37,373 bases of DNA from Trichosphaerium sp. ATCC 40318 (GCA_038496445.1 JALMLS010000226.1:1-37373), one strand, 5' to 3'. Positions 1 to 31,529 are shown, numbered from the stretch's first letter. A program made the numbers and translations. Notes: generated from the letters alone by a model not told the origin.

Positions 1-306
1 TTATAAGTATTACCACCAGCAAAGCATTTAATGAAGACAAGTATGAAGCTATTATACATTCTCTTTAAATATTTTTCAGGTGTCCCTAGTGTAAATACGG
101 AGAAACTTATAGTATAGTAGAGCACCTAAAGGTGAATTGGTGTATTTTTAAAATCAAATGGATCTACAAGCCGGTGAGATGTCGAATAAAATCACCAGGT
201 TTTTACACCTTCAGGCATTAGATTCTTTATCTAGCATGGTATGTTAGCAGATATGGTTGCCGTAGTAGGATCTTTAGATTTAGTTTTTGGAGAAATTGAT
301 AGATAA
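1..306 (+). CDS. nad7: NADH dehydrogenase subunit 7, 3' part (duplicate copy; frameshifted cryptogene)
   Basis: Motifs APKGE, RCRIKSPGF and MLADMVAVVGSLDLVFGEIDR* are readable in shifting frames; TAA at 304-306. Inverse of 17492-17795. Confidence 0.93.
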
Positions 307-389
307 GAATTTAAAAAAAATTATTATTGAATTTATATAGTTTAGAAAAAAGAGTAATAAAAAAAAAAAAAAAGTAAAAAAAAAAAAAA

Positions 390-627
390 ATGGAATGACA
401 AATAGTTATTAGCAGCAAAAGTATTAGCAGCAGGAGTATGTACTGTCGGTGTAGGAGGAGCAAGTATAGGTATAGGTATAGTTTTTGGAGGTTTATTAAT
501 AGCAGTAGTATCTAGAAATCCTGAATTAGAAGCTAATTTATTTAGAACAGCACTTTTAGGTTTTGCTTTATCTGAGGCGATGGGTTTATTAGTTTTAATG
601 ATGTCTTTTTTAATTATGTATACATAG
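390..627 (+). CDS. atp9: ATP synthase subunit 9 (duplicate copy)
   Basis: GVGGASIGIGIVFGG..SRNP..LGFALSEAMGL. Has 4 extra nt relative to the intact minus-strand copy, probably sequence errors. Confidence 0.95.
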
Positions 628-647
628 TAAAAAAGACATCATTAAAA
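593..647 (+). terminator. Hairpin with 20-bp arms spanning the atp9 stop codon (possible terminator or processing signal)
   Basis: ttttaatgatgtctttttta ... taaaaaagacatcattaaaa; also present at 17154-17208. Confidence 0.5.
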
Positions 648-852
648 GGATAGTTTATTTTTTATATTAGTAGATATCGCATATATTCTTTGTAGTTCTG
701 TTTTTTTTTTTTTTTTTTTCTATATAAAAAACATCTGTTAGTATAGGGGATTTTATTTTTTTTTTTTATTTAAATCTTTAAATTTTTTTATTAATTTAAA
801 GAGTAAAAAAAAGTAAAAAGTTTTCTATTAGAGTTTTTATTTTTATTATATA

Positions 853-3390
853 TTAAGTATTAAGGGGATTACTAGGTATCAAGAAAAAAGACGCTTTAAT
901 AAAGCGAAAACTTTAATTGAGTAGTACAATGCTATGATTTTTAGGTATCTTTTTAAATTTTTAAAATAGAAAAATAAAAATAGGGAAGTGAAACATCTCA
1001 GTACCTATAAAAAAAACATCGTGTAGAAACGTTAGTAGTGGTGACAAATGCGTTGAGTTCTTTTAAGTAGAGAAAATCGAATAGGCAGTGCCTGCTGCTA
1101 AAGTAAGAATTTTTTGATAACCGATAGTGTAAAAGTACTGTGAAGGAAGTTGAAAAAGATATCGTAGGGATAGTTGAAAAGAAATGAACTTAATACTTTA
1201 AACGGTTGGAGTATAAAAAAAGATATGACAGCGTACTTTTGTATAATGGGCCAATGAGTATATTTTTGAGCAAGCTTAACTTTAAGGGAGCGTAGTGAAA
1301 GCAAAGAGTAAATCTGTAAAAGTCTAAAAAATATGACCGAAACCAAGTGATCTAACAACACCAAGTTTTTGGCTGAAACGGTGTCTGTTGCAAGAGGCTC
1401 GATGAGTGTTGGTTAGGAGTGAAAGCTAATCAAACTTGGTGATAGTGGTTTTCTGCGAAACTTGTTTAAGCAAGCGTATTTTGATTTTGTAGAGTATGGC
1501 ACTAATATTATTCCGGAGTAACTAAGTTATTTACGGGTATAGTGAAACCAAGATGTTATAAAATAAAAAAGTATAGAAAGACTTAGGTGCGAAGATTCTA
1601 GTCGAGAGGGGAAAAAGCCCAGACTATAAGCTAAGCCCTTAAATAATAATCAACTGGAAAGACGTAATAAAAGCGGAGATGGGCTAGAAGCAGCCATTCT
1701 TTAAAGATGCGTAAAAGCTCACGTATTGTTTTTTAAGCGTCATGATGTAAGGGGTCTAAATTATTTGCGAAGCTATAGAATTAATTTGGTAGCAGATGTA
1801 TTGTATGTAAAAAACTGTACGTGAGTTTGGTTAAAATATCAATAGTATAAATGTTGCATGAGTAGCTTTATATGTAAAAACATTATTACGAAAGATTAAG
1901 GTTTCCTTATCTATGTTAAACAGATAAGGGTTAGCGGTCCTTAAGGGAATGTGTTTGTAAGATTCCGACTAAGGTTATATTAGTTATATTCAGAGCAATT
2001 TTATAGAAATTTAATTACAAAAAATAGTTATTGTAATCGTAAAATATCAATTTTTTTGTAACTTACAAGAAAAAAATAAAAAAAAAAACGTACCAATAAC
2101 CGACACAAGGTAATTAGTTGTAGAACAATAAGTAATAGAAGAATAATGCTTAAGGAACTCGCAAAATAACTCAGTAACTTCGGGAGATAGGTACCTAAAA
2201 TATTGTTTTTTAAAATAAATTAAAAGTGAAAATAATTTATTTTTAAGAAGTATTTTGGGGGAAGCGGAACAGAGAAGAGCGACTGTTTACTAAAAACACA
2301 GGACCCTGCTAAATAGTATATGAAGTATAGGTTCGATGCCTGCCCGTGCTGTATCGTGAAAAGGATTTGTTTAAAAGCAATGAATATAAGCAGCAGTAAA
2401 CGCGGCCGTAATCCTTGACGTCTTAAGGTAGCGAAATTCCTAGCTATTAATTGTAGTCCTGCATGAAGCGTAACGACTCTTCTACTGTCTCAAGTGTTAT
2501 TTTAGTGAATTGAAGTTTTCGTGAAGATGCGAAAAAATTGCAGCGGGACGGAAGACCCTGTGCACTTTACTAAAACCTTGTATGGGTTAAGGAAAGCAAA
2601 AAACAGTATAATCAAGAGGTATGATTTAATGGTTTAGGTCATTTAAGGAGCCGTCAGTGGATATTGATTTTTTGTTGGAAAATCTAATCTTAGTAGAAAA
2701 TTAAAAATGCATGGTGGATAGTTTGTCTGGGGCGAAGCTCCCTAAAAGGTAACGGAGTGTACAAAGGCTAATTCAGGACGTTAAAGTTCCGTAGTGCATA
2801 TGGTTTTTATTTTAGCTGACTGTAAGCTTGAAAGGGTTAACAGGGATTTAAAGTCGTCATAGTTTTCCGGATGCGCTTACAGGTAGGGCATCCGCAAACG
2901 GATAAAAGTACGCCAGGGATAACAGCTTATTGCCTTTGAGAGTTCTTATCTGCGAGCGGTTTGGCACCTCGATGTCGGCTCATCTCATCCTGGGGGAGTA
3001 GGCTCCCAAGGGTACGACTGTTCGTCGTTTAAAGAGGTACGTGAGCTGGTTTAGAACGTCGTGAGACAGTTTGCCCCTATCTGCTGTGATAAAAATTAAA
3101 ATTAGAGCCCAATGCAGTACGAGAGAGGCGTTATGGTAATAGGGTGCACCGCTTGTGGTAGCGTTATCGGTTTTACGTTCCGGTTGGCGTTAAAGCTACG
3201 TGCGAAAAAGGAACTGCTGATAACATATAAGTAGAATCTGCTAATTTTAATTTATATTTATGATTCAATATCAGGATTAAATATGGTAGTAAAAAAAATA
3301 TTGTAAAATAATGTTATATATATTTTTTTTACAACTGTAAAAAAAATATATATAAGGTAGTTTTTTTGACTAGATTCCATTAATTAAGTT
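853..3390 (+). rRNA. rnl: Mitochondrial LSU rRNA (duplicate copy)
   Basis: gaagtgaaacatctcagtacc, ccgatagtgtaaaagtactgtgaagga, gactgtttactaaaaacacagg, aaggtagcgaaattcc, ggcacctcgatgtcggctcat, tttagaacgtcgtgagacagtt. Ends approximate. Confidence 0.97.
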
Positions 3391-3452
3391 TTTATAAAAG
3401 TAGAGAAAAAAAGATTTTTAATAAATAAAAAGTATATTATAAATTAAAAATA

Positions 3453-4960
3453 ATGTATTTATTAAGTTTTTATCAATATTTATGTTACATTAAGAGTGGT
3501 CATGTTCAACAAATCATAAAGATATAGGATGCTATATATATGAGCAAGTTTTTTTGGAGGAGTATGGGAACTATATTATCATGATAATACGTATAGAGAA
3601 TTAGGAATGCCTGTCCGTTAATTTTGTTCAAGATAACAAGTTTATAATGTAATCGTAACAGCGCATGTCTATTAATGATTTTTTTTTTCGTTATGCCTTT
3701 ATTAATAGGGGTTTAGGTAATTTTATAGTTCATTAAGTTTAGGGGCCCGGAGATGCATTCCCAAGAGTAAATAATTTAGGTTTCTGATTATTGCGCCTTC
3801 TTTATTATTATTAATGTGATCTTTGTTATAGGAGATGGTGCAGAGCAGGATGAACTTTATATCCATTACTTTCTGTATTAAGGCTAGTCCTGGAATGTCA
3901 TAGATGCTTGTATTTTGAGTTGCATATAGCCGGAATTTCATCAATATCGGTGCAATAAATTTTATGGTAACTATAATGAATATGCGATTATGGATACTTA
4001 TAGAATTGGTTGTTTGCAGTATCATTTATATAACAGCGGTATTATTATTATTGACATTACCTGTTTTAGAGGAGCTTTAGTTATGTTAATAACAGATCGT
4101 ATTTTAATACAACATTTTTTGATCCACAGGAGTGAGATATCCTGTTTTATATCACATATTTTTGATTTTTTTGGACATCAGAGTTTATATATTAATATTA
4201 CCAGCTTTTGTATAACTAGTGTAGTAATTTCTGTTGAACTTATAAAGAGGTTTATGTCATGATTCTATGGTTTATGCATGGTATGTATAGCAGTTTTAGG
4301 ATCTATTGTATGAGTCATCATATGTTTACAGCGGGTTTAGATGATGATACGAGGTATATTTTTATGACAGTAACTATGATAATAGCAATGCCTTCAGGGT
4401 TAAAGTTTTTGGTTGTTATCAACAATAATGTTTGTATAGTAGAAATGAAGAGTTCCGCTATTTTATGCTGCAGATTTGTACTAATGTTTAGTTTTGGAGT
4501 GTAACTGGTATTATTTTAGCAAACGTGTTTTAGATATAGCATTGCATGATACATATTATGTGTTGCTCATTTTCATTATGTTTTATCTTTAGTTCTGTGT
4601 TTGGAATTTTTGCGGGTTTTATCATGGAAGTTCTTTAATGTTTGGAAAAAAATATCCGATTTTATAGGAAGATTACAAATTTTGGGAAATTTTATAGGAG
4701 TAAATATGACTTTTTTGCCAATGCATTTGTTAGGATGGCGGTATGCCCAGAAGGATAGTGATTATCCAGATGCTTATGTTGCTTTAAATTTTTGATGTTC
4801 TGTTGGGCGTTATTTACTATCTGTGTTTATTTTTATTTATTTTATGTTATATTTTATGTCTATAGGAGAGTTTTTATATTTTATATTGTATACTCTTATG
4901 AAGATGCCTATGAGATTTAGTTGAAGATTACTTTTTAACAAAAGAGAGATCTTATTTTTA
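3453..4960 (+). CDS. cox1: Cytochrome c oxidase subunit 1 (duplicate copy; cryptogene with about 40 single-base gaps)
   Basis: STNHKDIG, YNVIVTAH, FPRVNN, GWTLYP, WFFGH(P)EVY, HHMFT, LHDTYY, AHFHYVLS, GMPRR, DYPDAY. 3' end uncertain. Confidence 0.97.
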
Positions 4961-5179
4961 AAGATAATTATAATTTTGGTGAGGATAAAGTTAGAAGTTT
5001 AAATGGTGTATTAGTCTTTAACTGTTTTTATTTTTTCGTGTTAAATCCAAATACAGGAATTTGAGTGTGCAAGTATACCTTTGAATTATGTAAGAAAAGG
5101 ATTGATGGTGTATCTACTCATTATTTGGTGCTTATTAATTTAATGTTTATTTATCTAGAAAGTATAAGAGGTTTTTTTA

Positions 5180-6117: not shown

Positions 6118-8657
6118 TGCAGCATAAAATAGCGGAATTCTTCATTCTACTATACAAAACATTATTTGTTGATAACAACCAAAACTTAACCCTGAAGGCA
6201 TTGCTATTATCTTAGTTACTGTCATAAAATATACCTCGTATCATCATCTAAACCCGCTGTAAACAATATGATGACTCATACAATTAGATCTAAAACTGCA
6301 TACATACCATGAATAAACCATTAGATTCAGACATAAACTCTTTTATAAGTTCAACAGAAATTACTACCATAGTTTTATAAAAAAGCTGGTAATATTAATA
6401 TATAACTTCTGATGTCCAAAAAAATCAAAAAATCTGTGATATAACATAAAACAGGATCTCACCTCCTGTGGATCAAAAAATGTTGTGATAAAATTTACGA
6501 TCTGTTATTAACATAACTTAAAGCTACCTCTAAAACAGGTATTTGTCAATATAATAATAACCGCTGTTATATAAATGTACTGCTAAACAACCAATTACTA
6601 TAGTATCATAATCGCATTTTCATTATAGTTACCATTAAATTTATTGCACGATATTTTGATGAAATTCCGGCTATAGCAAATCAAAATACAAGCATCTATG
6701 TACATTCCAGGACTAGCCTTAATACAGAAAGTAATGGATATAAATTCATCCTGCTCTGCACCATCTCCTATACAAAGATCACATTAATAATAATAAAGAA
6801 GGCGCAATAATCAGTAACCTAAATTATTTACTCTTGGGAATGCATCTACGGGGCCCATAACTTAATGAAACTATAAAATTACCATAATCCCCTATTAATA
6901 AAGGCATAACGAAAAAAAAATCAATAATAGCATGCGCTGTTACGATTACTTTATAAACTTGTTATCTTGAACCAAAATTAAAGGACAGGCATTCCTATTC
7001 TTATATACAGTATTATTCAGATATATAGTTCCCATACTCCTCCAAAAAAACTTGCTCATAAATATAGCATCCTATATCTTTATGAAATTTGTTGAACATG
7101 ACCACTCTTAATTGTAATCATAAATATTGATAAATACTTATTTAAAATACATTATTTTTAATTTATATTATACTTTTTATTTATTAAATTCTTTTTTTCT
7201 CTACTTTTATTAAAAACTTAAATAATGGAATTAGTCAAAAAAACTTCCTTTTATATATTTTTTTACAGTTGTAAAAAAATATATATAACATTATTTTACA
7301 ATATTTTTTTACTACCATATTTAATCCTGATATTTGAATCATAAATATAAATTAAAATTAGCAGATCCTTTTTTTAACTTATATGTTATCGCAGTTCCTT
7401 TTTCGCACGTAGCTTTAACGCCAACCGGAACGTAAAACCGATAACGCTACCACAAGCGGTGCACCCTATTACCATAAGCCTCTATTCGTACTGAATTGGG
7501 CTCTATTTTTAATTTTTATCACAGAAGATAGGGGCAAACTGTCTCACGACGTTCTAAACCAGCTCACGTACCTCTTTAAACGACGAACAGTCGTACCCTT
7601 GGGAGCATACTCCCCCAGGATGAGATGAGGCGACATCGAGGTGCCAAACCGCTCGCAGATAAGAACTTTCAAAGGCAATAAGCTGTTATCCCTGGCGTAC
7701 TTTTTATCCGTTTGCGGATGCCCTACTGTAAGCCATCCGGAAAAACTTGCGACTTTTAATAATGTTAACCCTTTCTAGCTTACAGTCAGCTAAAAATAAA
7801 AACCATATGCACTACGGAAACTTTAAAGTACTGAATTACCTTTGTACACTCGTGATTACCTTTTAGGGAGCTTTCGCCCCAGACAAAACTATCCACCATG
7901 CATTTTTAATTTTACTTAAGATTAGATTTTTCCAACAAAAAATCAATATTCACTGACGGCTCCTTAAATGACCTAAACCATTAAATCATACCTCTTGATT
8001 ATACGGTTTTTTGCTTTCCTTAACCATACAAGGTTTAGTAAAGTGCACAGGGTCTTCCGTACCCGCTGCAATTTTTTTCGCATCTTCACGAAAACTTCAT
8101 TTCACTAAAATAACACTTGAGACAAGTAGAAGAGTCGTTACGCATTCATGCAGGACTACAATTAATAGCTAGGATTTTCGCTAACCTTAAGACGTCAAGG
8201 ATTACGGCCGCGTTTACTGCTGCTTATATTTCATTGCTTTTAAACTAATCCTTTTCACGATACAGCACGGGCAGGCATCGAACCTATAATTAATTTATAT
8301 TTAGCAGGGTCCTGTGTTTTAGTAAACTGTCGCTATTCTCTGTTCCGCTTCCCCCAAATACTTCTTAAAAATAAATTATTTTACACATTTTATATTTATT
8401 TTAAAAAACAATATTTTAGGTACAATCTACCGAAGTTACTGAGTTATTTTGCGAGTTCCTTAAGCATTATTCTTCTTTACTTATTGTTCTACAACTAATT
8501 ACCTGTGTCGGTTATTGGTACGTTTTTTTTTTTTTTATTTTTTATCTTGTAAGTTACAAAAAATTGATTATTTTTAGGATTAAATAACTAATTTTTTGTA
8601 ATTTAATTTTAATAAAATTGGCTTGAATATAACTAATATAACATTAGTCGGAATCTT
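6118..8657 (-). repeat. Block B: error-rich inverted copy of about 1958-4473 (cox1 5' part and rnl 3' part)
   Basis: Reverse complement of cox1/rnl with scattered extra errors; the junction lies on the shared 5-mer tgcag at 6118-6122. Confidence 0.95.
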
Positions 8658-10850
8658 GAAACCAAGATGTTATAAAAGGAAAAAGTATAGAAAGACTTAG
8701 GTGTTTAAGTCGAGAGGAAAAAGCCCAGACTATAGCTAAGCCCTTAATGTTTTTCAACTGGAAAGACGTAATAAAAGCGGAGATGGGCTAGAAGCAGCCA
8801 TTCTTTAAAGATGCGTAAACTCACGTATTGTTTTTTAAGCGTCATGATGTAAGGGCTCTAAATTATTTGCGAAGCTATAGAATTAATTTGGTAGCAGATG
8901 TATTGTATGTAAAAAACTGTACGTGAGTTTGGTTAAAATATCAATAGTATAAATGTTGCATGAGTAGCTTATATGTAAAAACATTATTACGAAAGATTAA
9001 GGTTTCCTTATCTATGTTAAACAGATAAGGGTTAGCGGTCCTTAAGGGAATGTGTTTGTAAGATTCCGACTAAGGTTATATTAGTTATATTCAGAGCAAT
9101 TTTATAGAAATTTAATTACAAAAAATAGTTATTGTAATCGTAAAATATCAATTTTTTTGTAACTTACAAGAAAAAAATAAAAAAAAAAAACGTACCAATA
9201 ACCGACACAGGTAATTAGTTGTAGAACAATAAGTAATAGAAGAATAATGCTTAAGGAACTCGCAAAATAACTCAGTAACTTCGGGAGATAGGTACCTAAA
9301 ATATTGTTTTTTAAAATAAATTAAAAGTGAAAATAATTTATTTTTTAAGAAGTATTTTGGGGGAAGCGGAACAGAGAAGAGCGACTGTTTACTAAAACAC
9401 AGGACCCTGCTAAATAGTATATGAAGTATAGGTTCGATGCCTGCCCGTGCTGTATCGTGAAAAGGATTTGTTTAAAAGCAATGAATATAAGCAGCAGTAA
9501 ACGCGGCCGTAATCCTTGACGTCTTAAGGTAGCGAAATTCCTAGCTATTAATTGTAGTCCTGCATGAAGCGTAACGACTCTTCTACTGTCTCAAGTGTTA
9601 TTTTAGTGAATTGAAGTTTTCGTGAAGATGCGAAAAAATTGCAGCGGGACGGAAGACCCTGTGCACTTTACTAAAACCTTGTATGGGTTAAGGAAAGCAA
9701 AAACACAGTATAATCAAGAGGTATGATTTAATGGTTTAGGTCATTTAAGGAGCCGTCAGTGGATATTGATTTTTTGTTGGAAAAATCTAATCTTAGTAGA
9801 AATTAAAAATGCATGGTGGATAGTTTGTCTGGGGCGAAGCTCCCTAAAAGGTAACGGAGTGTACAAAGGCTAATTCAGGACGTTAAAGTTCCGTAGTGCA
9901 TATGGTTTTTATTTTAGCTGACTGTAAGCTTGAAAGGGTTAACAGGGATTTAAAGTCGTCATAGTTTTCCGGATGCGCTTACAGGTAGGGCATCCGCAAA
10001 CGGATAAAAGTACGCCAGGGATAACAGCTTATTGCCTTTGAGAGTTCTTATCTGCGAGCGGTTTGGCACCTCGATGTCGGCTCATCTCATCCTGGGGGAG
10101 TAGGCTCCCAAGGGTACGACTGTTCGTCGTTTAAAGAGGTACGTGAGCTGGTTTAGAACGTCGTGAGACAGTTTGCCCCTATCTGCTGTGATAAAAATTA
10201 AAATTAGAGCCCAATGCAGTACGAGAGAGGCGTTATGGTAATAGGGTGCACCGCTTGTGGTAGCGTTATCGGTTTTACGTTCCGGTTGGCGTTAAAGCTA
10301 CGTTTTAAAAAAAATCAAAGTTTTTTAAAAAGTCAAGTAAAAAATACTAATTTTAATTATATTTATGAAAATTTCAGGATTAAATATGGAAGTATAAAAA
10401 AAGTCTCCCCAAATAATGTTATATATATTTTTTCAAGAACAATTAAAAAAAAAGAATATAAAGTTTCTATAAAAAGATTCTCTTTCTTTTTCAAGCATGC
10501 TTATAATTTTATCTTTTCAAATTTCATTTTTACTATCTATTATAGTATATCAATCCATTAAAACAAGTTCATGTATTTTAATATCTTTTCATAAATTTTT
10601 AATAGTTACATTAAGAGTCTTCATGTTCAAAAAATCAAAAAGCATCATAGGATGCTATCATATATGAGCAAGTTTTTTTGGGGAGTATGGGAACTTTATT
10701 ATCATGATAATACGTATAGAATTAGGAAATCTGTCCGTTAATTTGGTTAAATATTAACAAGTTTATAATGATAATCAAAATAGCCATGTTTATTAATTAT
10801 TTTTTTTTTTCGTTATGCCTTTATTAATTTTTTTTTAGGTAATTTTTTAA
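8657..10850 (+). repeat. Block C: direct copy of about 1543-3730 (rnl and start of cox1), degrading after about 10300
   Basis: Starts tgaaaccaagatgttataaa as at 1543; near-identical up to about 10300, then a mosaic. Confidence 0.93.
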
Positions 10851-12614: not shown

Positions 12615-12839
12615 TTTAAAAAAACCTCTTATACTTTCTAGATAAATATAACATTAAATTAATATTAGCACCAAATAATGAGTAGATACACCATCAATCC
12701 TTTTCTTACATAATTCAAAGGTATACTTGCACACTCAAAATTCCTGTATTTGGATTTAACACGAAAAAATAAAAACAGTTAAAGACTAATACACCATTTA
12801 AACTTCTAACTTTATCCTCACCAAAATTATAATTATCTT

Positions 12840-14346
12840 TAAAAATAAGATCTCTCTTTTGTTAAAAAGTAATCTTCAACTAAATCTCATAGGCATCTTC
12901 ATAAGAGTATACAATATAAAATATAAAAACTCTCCTATAGACATAAAATATAACATAAAATAAATAAAAATAAACACAGATAGTAAATAACGCCCAACAG
13001 AACATCAAAAATTTAAAGCAACATAAGCATCTGGATAATCACTATCCTTCTGGGCATACCCGCCATCCTAACAAATGCATTGGCAAAAAAGTCATATTTA
13101 CTCCTATAAAATTTCCCAAAATTGTAATCTTCCTATAAAATCGGATATTTTTTTCCAAACATTAAAGAACTTCAATGATAAAACCCGCAAAAATTCCAAA
13201 CACAGAACTAAAGATAAAACATAATGAAAATGAGCAACACATAATATGTATCATGCAATGCTATATCTAAAACACGTTTGCTAAAATAATACCAGTTACA
13301 CTCCAAAACTAAACATTAGTACAAATCTGCAGCATAAAATAGCGGAACTCTTCATTCTACTATACAAACATTATTGTTGATAACAACCAAAAACTTTAAC
13401 CCTGAAGGCATTGCTATTATCATAGTTACTGTCATAAAATATACCTCGTATCATCATCTAAACCCGCTGTAAACATATGATGACTCATACAATAGATCCT
13501 AAAACTGCTATACATACCATGCATAAACCATAGAATCATGACATAAACCTCTTTATAAGTTCAACAGAAATTACTACACTAGTTATACAAAAGCTGGTAA
13601 TATTAATATATAAACTTCTGATGTCCAAAAAATCAAAAAATATGTGATATAAAACAGGATCTCCACCTCCTGTGGATCAAAAAATGTTGTATTAAAATAC
13701 GATCTGTTATTAACATAACTAAAGCTCCTCTAAAACAGGTAATGTCAATAATAATAATACCGCTGTTATATAAATGATACTGCAAACAACCAATTCTATA
13801 AGTATCCATAATCGCATATTCATTATAGTTACCATAAAATTTATTGCACCGATATTGATGAAATTCCGGCTATATGCAACTCAAAATACAAGCATCTATG
13901 ACATTCCAGGACTAGCCTTAATACAGAAAGTAATGGATATAAAGTTCATCCTGCTCTGCACCATCTCCTATAACAAAGATCACATTAATAATAATAAAGA
14001 AGGCGCAATAATCAGAAACCTAAATTATTTACTCTTGGGAATGCATCTCCGGGGCCCCTAAACTTAATGAACTATAAAATTACCTAAACCCCTATTAATA
14101 AAGGCATAACGAAAAAAAAAATCATTAATAGACATGCGCTGTTACGATTACATTATAAACTTGTTATCTTGAACCAAAATTAACGGACAGGCATTCCTAA
14201 TTCTATACGTATTATCATGATAATATAGTTCCCATACTCCTCCAAAAAAACTTGCTCATATATATAGCATCCTATATCTTTATGATTTGTTGAACATGAC
14301 CACTCTTAATGTAACATAAATATTGATAAAAACTTAATAAATACAT
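12840..14346 (-). CDS. cox1: Cytochrome c oxidase subunit 1 (cryptogene)
   Basis: Canonical cox1 motifs in shifting frames; ATG at 14346; 3' end approximate. Confidence 0.97.
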
Positions 14347-14409
14347 TATTTTTAATTTATAATATACTTTTTATTTATTAAAAATCTTTTTTTTCTCTAC
14401 TTTTATTAA

Positions 14410-16945
14410 AAACTTAATTAATGGAATCTAGTCAAAAAACTACCTTATATATATTTTTTTTACAGTTGTAAAAAAAATATATATAACATTATTTTACAAT
14501 ATTTTTTTTACTACCATATTTAATCCTGATATTGAATCATAAATATAAATTAAAATTAGCAGATTCTACTTATATGTTATCAGCAGTTCCTTTTTCGCAC
14601 GTAGCTTTAACGCCAACCGGAACGTAAAACCGATAACGCTACCACAAGCGGTGCACCCTATTACCATAACGCCTCTCTCGTACTGCATTGGGCTCTAATT
14701 TTAATTTTTATCACAGCAGATAGGGGCAAACTGTCTCACGACGTTCTAAACCAGCTCACGTACCTCTTTAAACGACGAACAGTCGTACCCTTGGGAGCCT
14801 ACTCCCCCAGGATGAGATGAGCCGACATCGAGGTGCCAAACCGCTCGCAGATAAGAACTCTCAAAGGCAATAAGCTGTTATCCCTGGCGTACTTTTATCC
14901 GTTTGCGGATGCCCTACCTGTAAGCGCATCCGGAAAACTATGACGACTTTAAATCCCTGTTAACCCTTTCAAGCTTACAGTCAGCTAAAATAAAAACCAT
15001 ATGCACTACGGAACTTTAACGTCCTGAATTAGCCTTTGTACACTCCGTTACCTTTTAGGGAGCTTCGCCCCAGACAAACTATCCACCATGCATTTTTAAT
15101 TTCTACTAAGATTAGATTTTTCCAACAAAAAATCAATATCCACTGACGGCTCCTTAAATGACCTAAACCATTAAATCATACCTCTTGATTATACTGTGTT
15201 TTTGCTTTCCTTAACCCATACAAGGTTTTAGTAAAGTGCACAGGGTCTTCCGTCCCGCTGCAATTTTTTCGCATCTTCACGAAAACTTCAATTCACTAAA
15301 ATAACACTTGAGACAGTAGAAGAGTCGTTACGCTTCATGCAGGACTACAATTAATAGCTAGGAATTTCGCTACCTTAAGACGTCAAGGATTACGGCCGCG
15401 TTTACTGCTGCTTATATTCATTGCTTTTAAACAAATCCTTTTCACGATACAGCACGGGCAGGCATCGAACCTATACTTCATATACTATTTAGCAGGGTCC
15501 TGTGTTTTAGTAAACAGTCGCTCTTCTCTGTTCCGCTTCCCCCAAAATACTTCTTAAAAATAAATTATTTTCACTTTTAATTTATTTTAAAAAACAATAT
15601 TTTAGGTACCTATCTCCCGAAGTTACTGAGTTATTTTGCGAGTTCCTTAAGCATTATTCTTCTATTACTTATTGTTCTACAACTAATTACCTGTGTCGGT
15701 TATTGGTACGTTTTTTTTTTTTATTTTTTTCTTGTAAGTTACAAAAAAATTGATATTTTACGATTACAATAACTATTTTTTGTAATTAAATTTCTATAAA
15801 ATTGCTCTGAATATAACTAATATAACCTTAGTCGGAATCTTACAAACACATTCCCTTAAGGACCGCTAACCCTTATCTGTTTAACATAGATAAGGAAACC
15901 TTAATCTTTCGTAATAATGTTTTTACATATAAAGCTACTCATGCAACATTTATACTATTGATATTTTAACCAAACTCACGTACAGTTTTTTACATACAAT
16001 ACATCTGCTACCAAATTAATTCTATAGCTTCGCAAATAATTTAGAGCCCCTTACATCATGACGCTTAAAAAACAATACGTGAGCTTTTACGCATCTTTAA
16101 AGAATGGCTGCTTCTAGCCCATCTCCGCTTTTATTACGTCTTTCCAGTTGATTATTATTTAAGGGCTTAGCTTATAGTCTGGGCTTTTTCCCTCTCGACT
16201 AGAATCTTCGCACCTAAGTCTTTCTATACTTTTTTATTTTTATAACATCTTGGTTTCACTATACCCGTAAATAACTTAGTTACTCCGGAATAATATTAGT
16301 GCCATACTCTACAAAATCAAAATACGCTTGCTTAAACAAGTTTCGCAGAAAACCAGCTATCACCAAGTTTGATTAGCTTTCACTCCTAACCAACACTCAT
16401 CGAGCCTCTTGCAACAGACACCGGTTCAGCCAAAAACTTGGTGTTGTTAGATCACTTGGTTTCGGTCATATTTTTTAGACTTTACAGATTTACTCTTTGC
16501 TTTCACTACGCCTCCCTTAAAGTTAAGCTTGCTCAAAAATATACTCATTGGCCCATTATACAAAAGTACGCTGTCATATCTTTTTTATACTCCAACCGTT
16601 AAAGTATTAAGTTCATTTCTTTTCAACTATCCCTACGATATCTTTTTCAACTTCCTTCACAGTACTTTTACACTATCGGTTATCAAAAAATTCTTACTTT
16701 AGCAGCAGGCACTGCCTATTCGATTTTCTCTACTTAAAAGAACTCAACGCATTTGTCACCACTACTAACGTTTCTACACGATGTTTTTTTTATAGGTACT
16801 GAGATGTTTCACTTCCCTATTTTTATTTTTCTATTTTAAAAATTTAAAAAGATACCTAAAAATCATAGCATTGTACTACTCAATTAAAGTTTTCGCTTTA
16901 TTAAAGCGTCTTTTTTCTTGATACCTAGTAATCCCCTTAATACTT
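14410..16945 (-). rRNA. rnl: Mitochondrial LSU rRNA
   Basis: Universal LSU motifs of domains I-VI; ends approximate. Confidence 0.97.
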
Positions 16946-17173
16946 AATATATAATAAAAGTAAAAACTCTAATAGAAAACTTTTACTTTTTTTTACTCTT
17001 TAAATTAATAAAAAAATTTAAAGATTTAAATAAAAAAAAAAAATAAAATCCCCTATACTAACAGATGTTTTTTATATAGAAAAAAAAAAAAAAAAAAAAC
17101 AGAACTACAAAGAATATATGCGATATTCTACTAATATAAAAAATAAACTATCCTTTTAATGATGTCTTTTTTA

Positions 17174-17407
17174 CTATGTATACATAATTAAAAAAGACAT
17201 CATTAAAACTAATAAACCCATCGCCTCAGATAAAGCAAAACCTAAAAGTGCTGTTCTAAATAAATTAGCTTCTAATTCAGGATTTCTAGATACTGCTATT
17301 AATAAACCTCCAAAAACTATACCTATACCTATACTTGCTCCTCCTACACCGACAGTACATACTCCTGCTGCTAATACTTTTGCTGCTAATACTATTTGTC
17401 ATTCCAT
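17174..17407 (-). CDS. atp9: ATP synthase subunit 9, intact 77 aa
   Basis: 234-nt uninterrupted frame with TGA=W: MEWQIVLAAKVLAAGVCTVGVGGASIGIGIVFGGLLIAVSRNPELEANLFRTALLGFALSEAMGLLVLMMSFLIMYT*. Confidence 0.97.
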
Positions 17408-17491
17408 TTTTTTTTTTTTTTTACTTTTTTTTTTTTTTTATTACTCTTTTTTCTAAACTATATAAATTTCAATAATAATTTTTTTAAATTC

Positions 17492-18726
17492 TTATCTATC
17501 AATTTCTCCAAAAACTAAATCTAAAGATCCTACTACGGCAACCATATCTGCTAACATACCATGCTAGATAAAGAATCTAATGCCTGAAGGTGTAAAAACC
17601 TGGTGATTTTATTCGACATCTCACCGGCTTGTAGATCCATTTGATTTTAAAAATACACCAATTCACCTTTAGGTGCTCTACTATACTATAAGTTTCTCCG
17701 TATTTACACTAGGACACCTGAAAAATATTTAAAGAAATGTATTATAGCTTCATACTTGTCTTCATTAAATGCTTTGCTGGTGGTAATACTTATAATTATT
17801 TACTTTAACACTTTGTAATTTAAATTTTACATATATATTAAACACTGCTTAATTATCTTACGCTTTCTTTCATTTCCAAAATACGCAACATAAAACGATC
17901 ATACAATCACCATAAACTCCACAGGTATTTTAAACTTAAGTAAGTTATACACTCGTAAGGTTGCATGATTCTTAAATCTCAACAAAAACCAACGGACTTA
18001 AAATAACTCCAGAAAACCATAATCAACTGCCATCCTAAAAGGTGCTATAGCTATATTTACTAAACGCTGCTAAATATTCTATTATCTCTTATTAAATCTT
18101 CTAATCAAAAATTCTATATATAAATGATTCAAAAAAGATCCTATATCAGATATTAGTGTTGGTGTATATCGTTCACTAAACGCCAGGTCTAAAATATGCT
18201 GCATGAAACCTCGCACTGATACTCTTTCATAAAATTCCAACACCTTTTCCCTTCTTCAAACGCTCAGAGAAAAGGTGTTAATGCACAAGATCTAACGCAT
18301 GTGTTGTTAGAGCAATAAATGATTTAAAATACGTGTTAATCCATAAAAATAACGCGTATACTTTTGCACGTAACGGATACTCACTCCTAATAAATTTCAA
18401 CTGCTTTAACATAAACTTGTTCTTGACCATCATAGATACATATCTAACCTATCAAAATAAGGCAAACTTTGCAAGTAGGTTTATACTCTATTAACTTTTC
18501 AGTACCTCTATGCAATAACCTATATGAGTATCTATTTCAATAACAGTTTCCCATATAATTTTACTACTAGTCTTAATACACCATGAGCTGCTGATGCTGC
18601 GGACCAAAATTTAGTGTTAAAATAGCTACTTTAAAAAAAACACTTGCAAAAACTTGTTTTTTAACGACCCCACATTACTTTAATTTTTCTTGAGTTACGT
18701 AAATAACGTCAAATAAACGTATTCAT
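17492..18726 (-). CDS. nad7: NADH dehydrogenase subunit 7 (cryptogene)
   Basis: LTLNFGPQH(P)AAHGVLRLV, LHRGTEKL, LPYFDRLDYVSM, DLVFGEIDR*. Start approximate. Confidence 0.95.
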
Positions 18727-24367: not shown

Positions 24368-24571
24368 AGACAATTGCTCGGCTTAATCAGCTTTTGCTAT
24401 AAATAGAAATAGATTATTTACTAGCTTTTTATTCATAATCTATTTCTATTTATAGCAAAAGCTGATTAAGCCGAGCAATTGTCTTCATGATTTTAAAACC
24501 TGGTTTTTTACATGTAAAAAACCAGGTTTTAAAATCATGAAGACAATTGCTCGGCTTAATCAGCTTTTGCT
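24368..24571. repeat. Nested palindromes / inverted triplication
   Basis: aagacaattgctcggcttaatcagcttttgct occurs in +,-,+ orientation. Confidence 0.92.
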
Positions 24572-27500
24572 TTTCTTCTTTTTTTTTTTTTCCTCCCGTT
24601 TCAATCACATTCAAAATTTTCTAGAAAAACCTTGCGTAAAGAAATTAAGAACATAAGCCTGCTATGTTCAAAACCTTCACTTAAAACTAAACGATAATTT
24701 CTAAAATCATTTAAAGTATTTATATAAGAAAACCTTGGTGAATTAGCTTTAAAAATTGGTTGTGTATTATCCTTAAAATCTAAACGAGCACGTAAATCAC
24801 GTAGAAAGCTTTTACGTAAATTTTTAGCTAAAGTAGCTCGTCTATCAGATAGACGAGCTACTTTAGCTAAAAATTTACGTAAAAGCTTTCTACGTGATTT
24901 ACGTGCTCGTTTAGATTTTAAGGATAATACACAACCAATTTTTAAAGCTAATTCACGCTTCTTTTTAGTTATATCTGAAAATATACCTTTTTTCAATAGA
25001 TAAGATATATAATTATAATAATATACCTTATCATATTTTTTCTTTTTTTTTTTCCTTTTTTTTTCTTTTTTTTTTTTTAGTTTTTTTCTAATAAGATTAT
25101 ATATCTTTAATATTTTCTTAAAAGACCTTATTTTATATACCTTTCCTTTTTTTATTATTTTTTTTTTTTTTTTTTTTTTTTCCTTTTTTTTTAATTTATA
25201 AATTAACTTTTTATCTTTTATACGAAATTTTCTTCATCTTTTCCCATAACCTCTCCTATTATTTCTCTTTTTTTTTATTTTTGCTCATTTTCATGCTTTT
25301 ATTTGACTTTTTTTGAAATAATTATTTTTTTTTCCTCTTTTTAAACTTTTAGTTTTTTTTAAAGTAAACCTTTTTTTATTATTTAAATAATTATTTCAAA
25401 AAAATGATTTAAATAATCTCCCATTAAACGTTTTCTCTATAAAGTTAATACGTCTATTTCTTAATTTTTTTAAATATATAGTTCTTATCTTCTTTTCGTT
25501 TCATTTTTTTCCTTTGTTATATTTTAATCAAAGATTATATTTAATTTTTCTCGATAGTTTTCCACTTTTATCTAAACTTCAAATTAATTTATTATAATAT
25601 AAGCTGTCCCTCGCTAAAAGAGTAGAACGTATTAATATATTCATCATATTATTAAAACCTAGATTATTTGTTGTAACTTTTTTGGTCTTTTTATTTTTCA
25701 TTTGAACCATTGTTTAATAAATCTTATTTCCTTACGTTTACCTTCTTTTTCTCTAAAAGCATTTAATTTTATTTTTTTTATAAGTCTTCATAAACCATAA
25801 ATATCTATACTATGTTTATATTTACGACGTATTAACTGCAATAGTTTGGCTCTACCTTTATTTTTAAATATTATTCAATGACGCCATACTCAAAATAATC
25901 TATCTTTACGATCCTCACCATAAATATATCTTAATTTTCTATAAAATTCTTTTCATTTTTTTTTTTCATTAAAAAACAATCAATTTTTTCCAAATGATTT
26001 TAATTTTAACTATTAGGTAGAAATCATCTTACATTTCTATTTTTTTTAAAATTTACACATTGATTTTTGCTACCAAATAATCATTTTTTATAAAATTTTT
26101 TATTTTGTCACCGTCTTTTTGATATAAATTTTTTAAATTTTACAAAATTTCCTTTTCAAAGGTATGCTAAGTTATTTCGTAATTTAAATAACCAGTTTTT
26201 TTACGCATACGTTTGACAATACGTTGCATAAAAGATCGTGCTGCATTTCTAATGCAGCACGATCTTTTATGCAACGTATTGTCAAACGTATGCGTAAAGC
26301 TTTGACTATTTAACAAAATCCCCCAGCTTTTTTACGTTTTGAGAAATCGACTTTATTATAATAAAGTCGATTTCTCAAAATAAAATTTTTAAAAGATAAC
26401 CTTGTGTTTAAATCAAAAGGTTTATGGAATCGTAAAACGTTTCGCTAGACGCTTTTCCTAAAATTTAGGAAAAGCGTCTAGCGAAACGTTTTACGATTCC
26501 ATAAACCTTTTGATTTAAACGTATTTAATTTTATTTGACAAGATTTAGTTGCTTTGTTTTTAAATAAATTTTGCTTTCAAAATTTATTTATTTTTTTATT
26601 AACCTTTTCCAACATAGCAAAACGCTTCTTTCTACTAATATATTTATACTTTCTCCACTTTTTTTTTCTTTTTTTATATACATTCTTATTTAATACCTTA
26701 TTTTTCTTTATTTTTAATAAACGTTTTTTTTTTAACAATCGTTTTTTCTTTAAAAATCTAATATATTTTTTTTTATTATCTATTATTTTATACTTTATTT
26801 TACCTCACTTTTTTTTTATTAAAACTCATGCTTGTAATCTTCTATTTCTATTTTTTGATTTTTTTTTTTCTTTTTTTTTTAATTTTAATCTTTTACGCCA
26901 TTTTGTACCTAAAATATATCCTCATTCTTTTTTTTTTTTTGCTTTTTTTTTTTTTAGTATTTTACGTATCCCATATCAAAACCATTCTTTTTCTAAATTT
27001 TTTTTTAAACTAACACTTTTTTTTTCTTTTTCATTCTTTTTTTTCCGTTTCATTCTTTTTTTGTTTGCTTTTAAAATTCATCCTTTATAAAAACTATTAT
27101 AATAATTTTTATAAATTTTTCTATATATATTTTTTTTTTCTTCTTTTACTTTTTTCCCTCTTTTTTTATAAATTAAATTTCTTAAGCTTTCTAATTTTTT
27201 TTTTTTTTCTTTTTTTTTTTTTAAGTATAAAAATCTCATTAAATTTTTATACTTAGTTTGTTCTACGTTTTTTCTTTTATTTTTCAATTTAACATAATAA
27301 AAAAAAAGAAGAGATTTTATATTAAATTTGATTCTTCTTTTTTTTCTAATAACTAAAAATTTAAAAAACTTATGATTAAAATTTTTAATCATTTTAATCA
27401 TTTTATTTTTTAATATTAATATCATAAGTTTATTTAACTTATATTTTCTTTTTATTTTCTTAATCTCTTTTTTATATCTTTTTTTTTGCTTTATTATTTT

Positions 27501-28451
27501 TTTAATCTCTTTTTTTATTGCTTTTTTTTTTTTCCTAAGTTTTTTAAAAAATTTTTTTCTTTTTTTTTTAATCTCTTCTTTTTTTTCAATTTTTTTTTGT
27601 TTTATTCTTTCTTGCCTGCGATCTCATGCTCTTTTTTTTCTAAAATAACCTTTTGTATATCTACCTACTAAAAATTTTAATACCTTTTTTTTTTTTTTCT
27701 TTTTTTTTAATATTCTTTTTATTTTATTACCTTGACTTTTTTTGGTTTTTAAAATTTTTATTTTAGAATTAAAAATTTTTATTTTATATTTTACATTAAA
27801 TTTAAATTTTTTCAGAAGCTTCTGAAAAAATTTAAATTTAATGTATTTTTTTTTATAATGTTCTTTTTTTATCTTTTTTATTTTTTCTTTCCTTTTTTTT
27901 GTTTTTTTTTTTCTTTCCTTTCTAAAATATAAAAAATACTGACGTCGTAAGTATTTTTTATATATTTTACTTGGTTTTTTTACTATTCTTTTTATTTTTT
28001 TTAATAAAAACCTTTTTCTAATGTAACGTTTATGAAAAAACAATGAAGGTTTTAAAATTATATTTTTTACGTGATATTTTATTAAGTCAAAGTTTTCTTT
28101 CTTTTTTAGATAGTCAATACACGTTGGACGTACGTCCAACGTGTATTGACTATCTAAAAAAGAAAGAAAACTTTGACTTAATAAAATATCACGTAAAAAA
28201 TATAATTTTAAATTACTTTCTTTAATTTTACTTTTAATTTTACCTACTAAATCAATATTAAAACTAACTTCTTTTCTTTCTTTTAAACATGTATTTATAC
28301 CTTCACTTTTATTTGTTTCTTTTAGATATGTATTTATACCTTCACTTTTATTTGTTTCTTTAAAAAAGATCCTATCGCGATTTTTTAAAGAAATATCCAG
28401 GTTTTTTCTTACTAGTAAAATTAAAGAGACCCAAAGGTTGTTTTTTTTCAC
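24555..28451 (-). CDS. Giant Lys/Arg-rich unassigned ORF (may extend to about 28860)
   Basis: ORF-track pieces 27624-28451, 27078-27425 and 24601-24996 are linked by long stretches that are open when TGA=W; the breaks I saw are few and mostly at homopolymers. Confidence 0.6.
24738..24956. repeat. 219-bp palindrome (109-bp arms, 1-nt loop)
   Basis: Centre ...gtctatc a gatagac... at 24847. Confidence 0.95.
26200..26520. repeat. Three adjacent palindromes: 26200-26298, 26337-26380, 26406-26520
   Basis: Arms of 48, 22 and 57 bp with loops of 3, 0 and 1 nt. Confidence 0.93.
27792..27845. repeat. 54-bp perfect palindrome
   Basis: Centred on cagaag|cttctg. Confidence 0.9.
28051..28212. repeat. 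162-bp perfect palindrome with no loop
   Basis: Centred on ggacgt|acgtcc; the same peptide appears on both strands in the ORF track. Confidence 0.96.
28282..28362. repeat. 39-bp in-frame tandem duplication
   Basis: KETNKSEGINTYL / KETNKSEGINTCL on the minus strand. Confidence 0.9.
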
Positions 28452-28815
28452 AAATAACCTTTGGGTCTCTTTAATTTTACTAGTAAGAAAAAACCTGGAT
28501 ATTTCTTACTAAGGTTATCTAATATTATTTCTTCGCTGGTATACTTAATTTTAAATTAATTTAAAATTAAGTATACCAGCGAAGAAATAATATTAGATAA
28601 CCTTAGTAAGAAATATCCAGGTTTTTTCTTACTAGTAAAATTAAAGAGACCCAAAATTAATGACTTAATTACTATTAAATTTTTATCGATAGGTAAGCGG
28701 GATATAAAGTTTACGTCTCTCTTTTAGTTAACTAAACAAAGACGTAAACTTTATATCCCGCTTACCTATCGATAAAAATTTAATAAAGCGGGATATAAAG
28801 TTTACGTCTTTGTTT
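28388..28815. repeat. Two inverted triplications (about 28388-28654 and 28674-28815)
   Basis: aagaaatatccaggttttttcttactagtaaaattaaagagacccaaa occurs +,-,+; aagcgggatataaagtttacgtct occurs +,-,+. Confidence 0.92.
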
Positions 28816-30491: not shown

Positions 30492-31514
30492 TTAAAAAAA
30501 AATAGATATTAAAAAATATATAACTTTTTTTAATATTTCAACAAATAAAAAAAAATCATTATCCATATCTAAAAAAATCTGAGTAGTTTCATTTAAACAA
30601 TCATAACAACCTACCATATTTTCTTCATAACTACAATATAAATTTCCATCAATATTTTCACCAATTTCCCTTACCAGTTGATTTTCTCCGGGAAACACTA
30701 TGTCAATTCCTTCTAAAGTATCTTTTCCTCCATAATCTTCTTCCTCAAAAGTCACAATATTCTCAAAAATTTCATTTGAACCATCAGATGCAATAGCTTC
30801 ATCTAAATTTAATGTATCTGATGAACTATCATCTAGTTCATCAGATACATTAAATTTAGATGAAGCTATTGCATCTGACAATAACTCATCTAAATTTGGA
30901 TTATTATATCCTTGAAAATTTTCTGTCCCTTGATAAGTAGGTTCATCTTCGATATTTACTATATTTTCTCTATAATTACCTCAATTGTAAGACTCTAAAG
31001 CTTGCTCCATTATTTTTACTGTTTCACTTGCAACGTCTAACTCTACCTCTACTTTTGGTATTTGTTGCTGCAATTCTAAAATTCCCTCAATTATTTTTTC
31101 GTCTAAATCTAAATCTGGATCTTCAAATTCAAAAGCTGGTAATATTAATATATTTTGCGGTTCAAAATATGCTTCACAATTCTCAAGATTCACATCGTTT
31201 TTTAAATTTTTATACCCTAAATTATAGCGAAGCACCTGATCAATACAGTCCATATCTACAGAGATTATATGATTATTACTATTATAATAAAAACCTGCAG
31301 CAAAACCTAAACAAACTATAAATAATACACTTGTTACTCCTAATAAAATGAACCTATTATGTATAACCTCCTCTAAATTTTGAGGTTCTAATATCAATCC
31401 TGGTATAGACACGTAGGCCCCTTTGCTTTTTTTGCTTTTTAGGCAATTAAAAAAAACAAAAAAAAAACGTGCCATTTTTTCCATTATTTCATCAACAATT
31501 TTAGAATTTTCCAT
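30492..31514 (-). CDS. Unassigned 340-aa acidic protein with a putative transmembrane helix
   Basis: Track ORFs 30981-31514 and 30492-30881 are in the same frame and join through TGA=W (1023 nt); hydrophobic stretch FILLGVTSVLFIVCLGFAAGFYY; D/E-rich remainder. Confidence 0.8.
30784..30878. repeat. 95-bp hairpin (45-bp arms, 5-nt loop) inside ORF340
   Basis: tcagatgcaatagcttcatc...gatgaagctattgcatctga. Confidence 0.93.
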
Positions 31515-31529
31515 GATAAGTAAGCTTAT

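Follow-up and report, generated by a model that had tools for sequence, protein, structure and literature searches.

The mitochondrial large-subunit rRNA gene (rnl) of Trichosphaerium sp. ATCC 40318 is a cryptogene: its DNA lacks some 55-60 individual nucleotides on which the ribosome depends, among them ones in the peptidyl-transferase loop, and these are very probably supplied by insertional editing at the RNA level. Any repair must take place in RNA, because the ribosome cannot repair rRNA. It would be a second and denser case of a type of editing known so far only from the amoeba BB2, in an apparently unrelated host.

Single-base gaps in the rnl DNA

We analyzed a 37,373-nt stretch of DNA, referred to here as the window. 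It is mitochondrial genome DNA, AT-rich (GC 14-37% per kb) and with a marked strand-specific GC skew. Rfam identified a bacterial-type LSU rRNA gene in two full-length and two partial copies, which are arranged as nested inverted repeats. Copy A, the full-length mitochondrial LSU rRNA cryptogene, lies at 841..3296 on the plus strand (Rfam RF02541, 873 bits, model positions 1-2925), and copy B, also full length, lies inside the inverted repeat at 14504..16959 on the minus strand (Rfam, 899 bits). Copy C (8987..10193, plus strand; Rfam) is a partial copy comprising the 3' half. Copy D (7518..8473, minus strand; two Rfam hits, at 7518-8093 and 8110-8473) is partial and degenerate, with extra T's and G>T changes. 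Upstream of copy A is atp9 (406..624, plus strand; Pfam ATP-synt_C), and downstream is a fragmented cox1 cryptogene (3453..5100, plus strand) with a Pfam COX1 fragment at 4259-4504. The other repeat copy of atp9 (17177-17437, minus strand) reads through in translation without any insertion when TGA is taken as Trp, a reading that the translations of atp9 and of the long open reading frames (ORFs) require. COX1 and ATP-synt_C were the only Pfam matches among the long ORFs of the window. The best match in a database search with atp9 was 96% identical; its contigs (L004 and L005) stop before rnl and have an extra ORF instead.

A first-pass annotation of this DNA had claimed that five conserved motifs of the LSU rRNA each lack a single G in all four rnl copies. 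All five motifs are where it had placed them, and an exact-string search of the window gave four occurrences of each, one in every rnl copy and two per strand. Running the check that it had proposed, we aligned the DNA to an LSU covariance model (Rfam LSU_rRNA_bacteria) and listed the single-base deletions; a one-base gap appeared at every one of the five sites, within otherwise perfectly matched universal motifs. All sites are given on the plus strand of copy A. At 2161 (site 1; E. coli ~1673/4), the alignment reads AAGGAACUC-GCAAAA, with a lone G against CUCGGCAAA in the consensus. At 2346 (site 2; E. coli 1839), it reads CCUG-CCCGUGC, with a lone G against the consensus CCCGGUGC, and at 2402 (site 3; E. 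coli 1903), AAACG-CGGCCG, with a lone G against AAACGGCGGCC. Site 4, at 2925, reads GAUAACA-GCU, a lone G against the consensus GAUAACAGGCU, and site 5, at 3048..3049, reads GAGCU-GGUU, with GG in place of the GGG of the consensus GAGCUGGGUU. The last two had been described as adjoining the peptidyl-transferase residues A2451 and U2585, which is right: site 4 corresponds to E. coli G2454/G2455, adjoining A2451, and site 5 to G2581-2583, adjoining U2584/U2585. In a four-copy alignment the copies are alike at all five sites; copy C is identical to copies A and B there, and copy D still shows the unedited state.

The five sites are real, but they are only a subset. By eye, we counted about 25 one-base gaps in the interval 2140-3075, and the losses extend to A, C and probably U, so the description of the gene as missing one G per conserved run holds for the five sites and is too narrow for the rest.

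We compared the number of such gaps with that expected by chance. Briefly, rnl copies A and B were aligned to the E. coli 23S gene (L001), and isolated one-base indels were counted where the 8-nt flanks were at least 5/8 identical on each side. Bacterial 23S genes served as the control, as the contigs around more distant atp9 relatives yielded no rnl; 120 bacterial 23S loci were fetched, and the 54 complete ones, a diverse set, were processed identically. Copy A has 36 isolated one-base deletions relative to E. coli, and 34 of the 36 sites are common to copy B. At this threshold, the common sites of the two copies comprise 34 deletions versus 6 insertions, compared with a mean of 5.9 deletions (maximum 13) and 6.6 insertions among the 54 controls. 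With flanks at least 6/8 identical, copies A and B have 18 and 17 deletions, respectively, and 3 insertions each, against control means of 2.6 deletions (maximum 7) and 3.0 insertions. The deletions in the window rnl are thus three to six times the control average and strongly one-sided, despite fewer alignable columns. An independent MAFFT alignment gave deletions versus insertions of 13 versus 0 (strict) and 19 versus 2 (loose). The one-base deletion pattern of rnl therefore exceeds chance.

By the E. coli base, the 34 common deletion sites comprise 14 G, 9 C, 7 A and 4 T. Seventeen of the 34 missing bases fall in runs, against a background of 0.48, a comparison that is uninformative about base doubling because E. 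coli cannot tell the added base where the window has diverged.

Inserted nucleotides in RNA-labelled contigs

Logan short-read contigs from four public sequencing runs (X1, X3, X4 and X11) were placed on the window; such contigs omit minor variants, and their depths are means per contig. X11 is labelled TRANSCRIPTOMIC RNA-Seq cDNA, and its depth is RNA-like and fits the label (rnl 100-500, cox1 5-16, spacer near 0). X3 and X4 are tagged 'DNA?' by a guess of the placement tool, and both runs carry strains 2-8% diverged from the window. The depth of X3 is flat and DNA-like, at 30-50 across rnl, spacer and cox1; that of X4 is patchier, with none over the spacer and little over cox1. X1, a run of unstated kind, holds both edited and unedited forms.

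The X11 rnl contigs differ from the window by only 0-1 substitutions per 300-460 nt, but each has 6-15 gap letters. Summed over 1755 nt of rnl, their net gain is 42 letters, or one extra letter in about 42 nt (2.4%). The same is seen in a protein gene: a cox1 mRNA contig (X11 record 16, covering 4191-5062) has 31 gap letters and, across these 872 nt, comes out a net 27 letters longer (about 1 per 32 nt; 3.1%). Because this mRNA contig holds those 31 gap letters, the frameshifts of coding genes, seen here for cox1, are also repaired in RNA.

We read single-letter insertions from the indel table, of which 12 of 149 rows were listed. The listed insertions, with the letter added behind the given plus-strand position, are 1473 G, 1706 A, 1750 G, 1795 A, 1855 G, 1871 A, 1888 C, 1934 C, 1956 G and 1985 A, that is, 4 G, 4 A and 2 C. 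Ten of ten are present in X11 and X1 and absent from X3. X4 is without the insertion at nine of the ten places; at 1750, part of X4 has the G. All insertion rows listed are single letters, with no dinucleotide insertion among them. The DNA-like runs share the rows in which a letter is left out (1215 and 1608) as well as the substitutions at 1378 and 2602, and for this reason we attribute these to assembly or strain differences.

In each of the ten listed insertions, the inserted letter equals the next window letter, for which the chance is roughly 0.5 per site. The first-pass annotation had its sites, all of them G, follow such a doubling rule; the doubling stands in 10/10 among the 12 of 149 rows listed, and the inserted bases are not G alone. 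No shared upstream motif was found among the listed sites. The base after the doubled one is usually of a different class at these sites (G|GC, A|AU, C|CG), and many identical GC, AT and CG dinucleotides remain without an insertion.

At least six of the ten listed insertions (1473, 1706, 1795, 1855, 1888 and 1934) fall on one-base model gaps in the covariance alignment of 1440-2130. Model gaps are therefore a valid predictor of insertion sites, including the five named sites.

The RNA rows for the five named sites lie outside the 12 of 149 listed, and we deduced their state from contig-length bookkeeping rather than direct reads, corrected for the differences of copy A from copy B at 2077, 2107, 2292, 2602, 2678 and 2697. 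All five sites are unedited in short-read, DNA-like contigs. X1 contig 4 (2089-2402, no substitution) has only two gaps, which are the extra A's of copy A at 2107 and 2292, and is thus unedited at 2161 and 2346; X1 contig 6 (2373-2497) has 125 letters and 0 gaps and is unedited at 2402. X4 contig 30 (2516-2986) has three gaps, exactly the copy-A-specific ones, and is unedited at 2925, as is X3 contig 21 (2966-3140, 0 gaps) at 3048.

An edited form over 2402 is indicated by X1 contig 5, which spans the same 2373-2497 with 129 letters and 4 insertions, where the model predicts 4-5 sites, 2402 among them. X11 record 13 (2552-2925) has about 9 letters more than the copy-A differences explain, against eight to ten sites predicted by the model. 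Its alignment ends precisely at 2925 with a remainder of eight letters, which is what a base inserted there would produce. Similarly, the alignment of an X1 contig begins exactly at 3048 with six loose letters ahead of it. These observations indicate insertions in RNA at or around 2402, 2925 and 3048. X11 record 12, which extends across 2161, exceeds the window by a net 10 letters. The contigs listed for X11 include none over 2346, where the edited state is predicted from the model gap. From the combined evidence, we infer that the five named sites belong to the edited set.

Alternative explanations and the source of the added nucleotides

We propose that the missing nucleotides would be added to the RNA at fixed sites, each as a copy of the adjacent templated one, and that insertion may take place during transcription, through a precise one-step stutter in which the mitochondrial RNA polymerase, at marked positions, copies the same template base a second time. 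Such a stutter is the simplest model because the inserted base always equals its neighbor, and it has been proposed for BB2; within the RNA-level reading, we consider the case for this step to be evenly balanced.

A separate machinery that cleaves the transcript, adds a nucleotide and ligates the ends, guided by RNAs or proteins and involving no stutter, is an improbable alternative. It would fit the presence in X1 of unedited next to apparently partly edited contigs; for example, X1 record 7 has about 3 unexplained insertions over 2468-2856, versus about 9 in X11 over the overlapping 2552-2925. However, these mixed contigs are explicable by carry-over of mtDNA in the library together with chimeric unitig paths, and the neighbor-copy rule is most simply a re-reading of the template. 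The study of BB2 found no guides, and unedited reads amounted to 0.33% there (PMC5421314). Neither strand of the window contains a stretch that agrees with the edited sequence across one of the five sites, a weak negative as it covers 37 kb only; short guide-like matches elsewhere in the window are chance or the hairpin of the site itself.

The four rnl copies might instead be pseudogenes, with the RNA coming from an intact rnl elsewhere, on another mitochondrial molecule or in the nucleus. Copy D is indeed plainly degenerate. We nonetheless regard this as very unlikely: apart from the extra letters, the RNA contigs match copies A and B with 0-1 substitutions, the DNA-like runs show no contig with the inserted letters at nine of the ten listed sites, and the same syndrome in cox1 would require a whole second genome.

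An assembly artefact, in which long-read assembly collapsed GG to G and the true DNA has the bases, deserves attention since residual one-nucleotide indel errors are present in the assembly. Over 5 kb, repeat copies A and B differ by 37 indels of one or a few bases, mostly a single A or T in a run, and within rnl the two copies differ by 14 one-base indels, mainly in A runs, and one substitution (1378). At 1215, 1378 and 2602, none of the four runs agrees with the window. Some gaps found in a single copy are assembly errors and are not countable as editing sites; the missing C at 1445 (E. coli 806), in copy A only, is one of these. If the window comes from the published Trichosphaerium assembly, residual indels are in keeping with how that was made: Canu assembled Nanopore and PacBio reads, and Pilon polished the result with Illumina reads (PMC10521059). 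Polishing performs badly in repeats. Noise of this kind cannot account for the five sites, because they are the same in four copies, where random errors would differ among copies, and are unedited by gap bookkeeping in the short-read contigs of other samples (X1, X3 and X4). Furthermore, the five sites are not homopolymers, the excess is one-sided toward deletions, and the DNA-like runs are without the insertion at nine of the ten listed sites. We therefore give the artefact almost no credence.

It is no more credible that the loss is tolerated, such that the rRNA functions without these bases, the gaps are lineage-specific deletions, and the RNA insertions lie only elsewhere in rnl. Mitochondrial rRNAs are known to endure large reductions, and the state of the five sites in RNA is known by bookkeeping, not individually, with 12 of the 149 rows listed. 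Yet the sites are part of single-stranded cores whose conservation is universal (G2454/5 beside A2451, and G2581-83 beside U2585), the net gains of the RNA contigs match the model gap counts in 2373-2497 and 2552-2925, and alignments break exactly at 2925 and 3048.

Programmed ribosomal frameshifting was rejected, in line with the first-pass annotation: programmed +1 frameshifting and translational bypassing in mitochondrial genes likewise involve frameshifted protein genes in the DNA, but here the same defect affects an rRNA, which is not translated, and the extra letters are in the RNA itself, in RNA-labelled contigs.

Comparison with known editing systems and implications

The closest parallel to this RNA-level editing is BB2 (Heterolobosea), for which Yang et al. 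(2017) described 475 mononucleotide insertions in mRNA, rRNA and tRNA, each the same as its neighbor (PMC5421314). Of these, 84% are G overall; the rRNAs account for 40 of the sites, with G at 35, and the LSU for about 22 of those 40 (PMC5421314). Unedited reads were so few that co-transcriptional polymerase stutter was proposed, with no motif and no guides (PMC5421314). As in BB2, the insertions listed for Trichosphaerium are single nucleotides that copy the adjacent base (10/10 among the 12 of 149 rows listed), and both rRNA and mRNA are affected. What the consensus has in addition at the five named sites is a G adjoining another G, in keeping with the BB2 rule. Other features in common with BB2 are the frequent insertion of G, an AT-rich mitochondrial genome that has large inverted repeats, and the lack of an evident motif around the sites. 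The two differ in density, as rnl has about 1 site per 42 nt, or roughly 58, making it about three times denser than the ~22 LSU sites of BB2. They also differ in base spectrum, which is mixed here (4 G, 4 A and 2 C among the 12 of 149 rows listed), as it also is at the 34 deletion sites common to copies A and B, 14 of them G. BB2 has 24 recognizable tRNA genes, whereas ARAGORN found none in the 37-kb window. Trichosphaerium is an amoebozoan and BB2 a discobid, so the system probably arose independently.

Physarum polycephalum, also a member of Amoebozoa, offers a parallel in density. Residues added co-transcriptionally make up ~4% of its mRNA and ~2% of its rRNA (PMC5192504), with all RNA classes affected (PMC3152335, PMC5192504); our estimates of 3.1% in cox1 and 2.4% in rnl are similar to these figures. 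Physarum adds mainly C, with some U and dinucleotides, and insertions that are usually not neighbor copies (PMC3152335, PMC5192504). In contrast, only 2 of the 10 listed insertions in Trichosphaerium are C, all 10 equal the next base, and no dinucleotide occurs among the rows listed. Paramyxovirus P genes also gain an extra G by re-reading of the template, at a slippery A(n)G(n) tract that gives a mix of +1 and +n products (PMC5421314); unlike these, most sites here are single bases in a non-repetitive context to which exactly one base is added.

We also searched JGI metagenomes for related sequences. A 33-nt stretch around 2925, with the G optional, gave 0 matches. No relative of the window came out of a signature scan of these metagenomes that required both missing Gs, at E. 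coli 1839 and 1903. The scan did return two GC-rich soil rnl genes (L002 and L003; 52-55% GC), with 36 isolated one-base deletions in 1.1 kb of L002 and 33 in 2.3 kb of L003. L002 runs on into an apparent intron with a LAGLIDADG-type motif. The same missing-base syndrome in these genes suggests that they may represent further, so far unrecognized lineages with insertional editing. The window and L002 have three sites in common beyond the two selected for, where ~0.9 would be expected, which is too weak to indicate common descent.

Our literature search found no paper on the mitochondrial genome of Trichosphaerium or its editing, and the Trichosphaerium genome paper contains no mention of mitochondria (PMC10521059). 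Gene finders, tRNA finders and barcoding with COI or rRNA fail or mislead on this mitochondrial genome unless editing is modelled. The cleanest proof of repair in RNA comes from the rRNA sites, above all from those next to A2451 and U2585.

To our knowledge, the choice of sites in co-transcriptional insertional editing has remained unsolved through 30 years of work on Physarum and, since 2017, on BB2. A second organism with a clean neighbor-copy rule would offer hundreds of sites, several diverged public strains and a draft nuclear genome. It would enable conserved and lost sites to be compared among strains, and the polymerase and its accessory factors to be compared between two lineages. We consider it doubtful, though worth stating, that template-doubling editing, rather than being an oddity of BB2, recurs in mitochondrial transcription or is an ancient amoebozoan feature of it. 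If this were true, such editing would have arisen or persisted in a marine amoeba for which a nuclear draft genome and cultures exist, and its Physarum-like density would raise the possibility that the same machinery underlies myxomycete editing, with a different rule for the choice of nucleotide.

Repeat copies and the rnl hairpin

We compared the two copies of the inverted repeat (85-5062 versus 12738-17713) and found 37 short indels and four substitutions between them. Most of these indels are single bases, chiefly within A/T runs, and some occur at doublets (1289 G, 1445 C, 1754 C, 3625 G, 4131 G, and 4739 G). The differences are probably unpolished long-read error in repeats. Gaps found in one copy alone are therefore untrustworthy as editing sites. 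The start of atp9 (390-410 versus 17415-17437) also differs by a single base: the minus-strand copy is open from Met (MEWQIV..., with TGA read as Trp), and in the plus-strand copy the reading frame shifts after six codons. The partial copy D of the mitochondrial LSU rRNA gene, rnl (7518-8473, minus strand), is degenerate: compared with the remaining three copies it has gained numerous T's and shows many G>T changes. Copy D is a pseudogene or else a repeat that was poorly polished. Within rnl, insertion of an A in the RNA behind position 1706 converts 1695-1709 into a perfect 16-nt palindrome, CATTCTTTAAAGAATG, and re-forms one base pair in a conserved hairpin of the rRNA.

tRNA genes, long ORFs, and marine relatives

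ARAGORN identified no tRNA genes across the window (1-37373, 37 kb of mitochondrial DNA); they may exist in cryptic (edited) form, lie on other contigs, or have been lost. Long lysine-rich ORFs of 385, 675, 345, and 495 codons lie on the minus strand in 24559-28505, 30495-31529, and 35169-36653, and stay open solely when TGA encodes Trp. In Pfam, their TGA-free parts had no matches. These ORFs lie uninterrupted in the midst of cryptogenes. Two marine-metagenome contigs, L004 and L005, are relatives (atp9 96% identical, ~80-84% nucleotide identity). In both, the interval separating the upstream gene's end from atp9 contains an extra ORF of 301-427 codons (L004:611-1698 and L005:233-1516), which is absent from the window.

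Soil LSU rRNA genes with missing bases

By demanding the absence of both Gs (E. coli 1839 and 1903), we retrieved two LSU rRNA genes from the soil metagenomes Ga0137417 and Ga0179591: L002 (380-1473, minus strand) and L003 (1-2311, plus strand). Both are GC-rich (52-55%). The rRNA match of L002 ends near model position 2000, and a LAGLIDADG-like motif, 'GFVDGE', is encoded immediately after it (L002:1-380, minus strand). Group I introns with a homing-endonuclease ORF are typical of organellar rnl genes, and the motif suggests such an intron here. Both show the missing-base syndrome of the window rnl: compared with E. coli, isolated 1-nt deletions number 36 over 1.1 kb in L002 and 33 over 2.3 kb in L003. 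L002 and L003 are candidates for further lineages with insertional editing.
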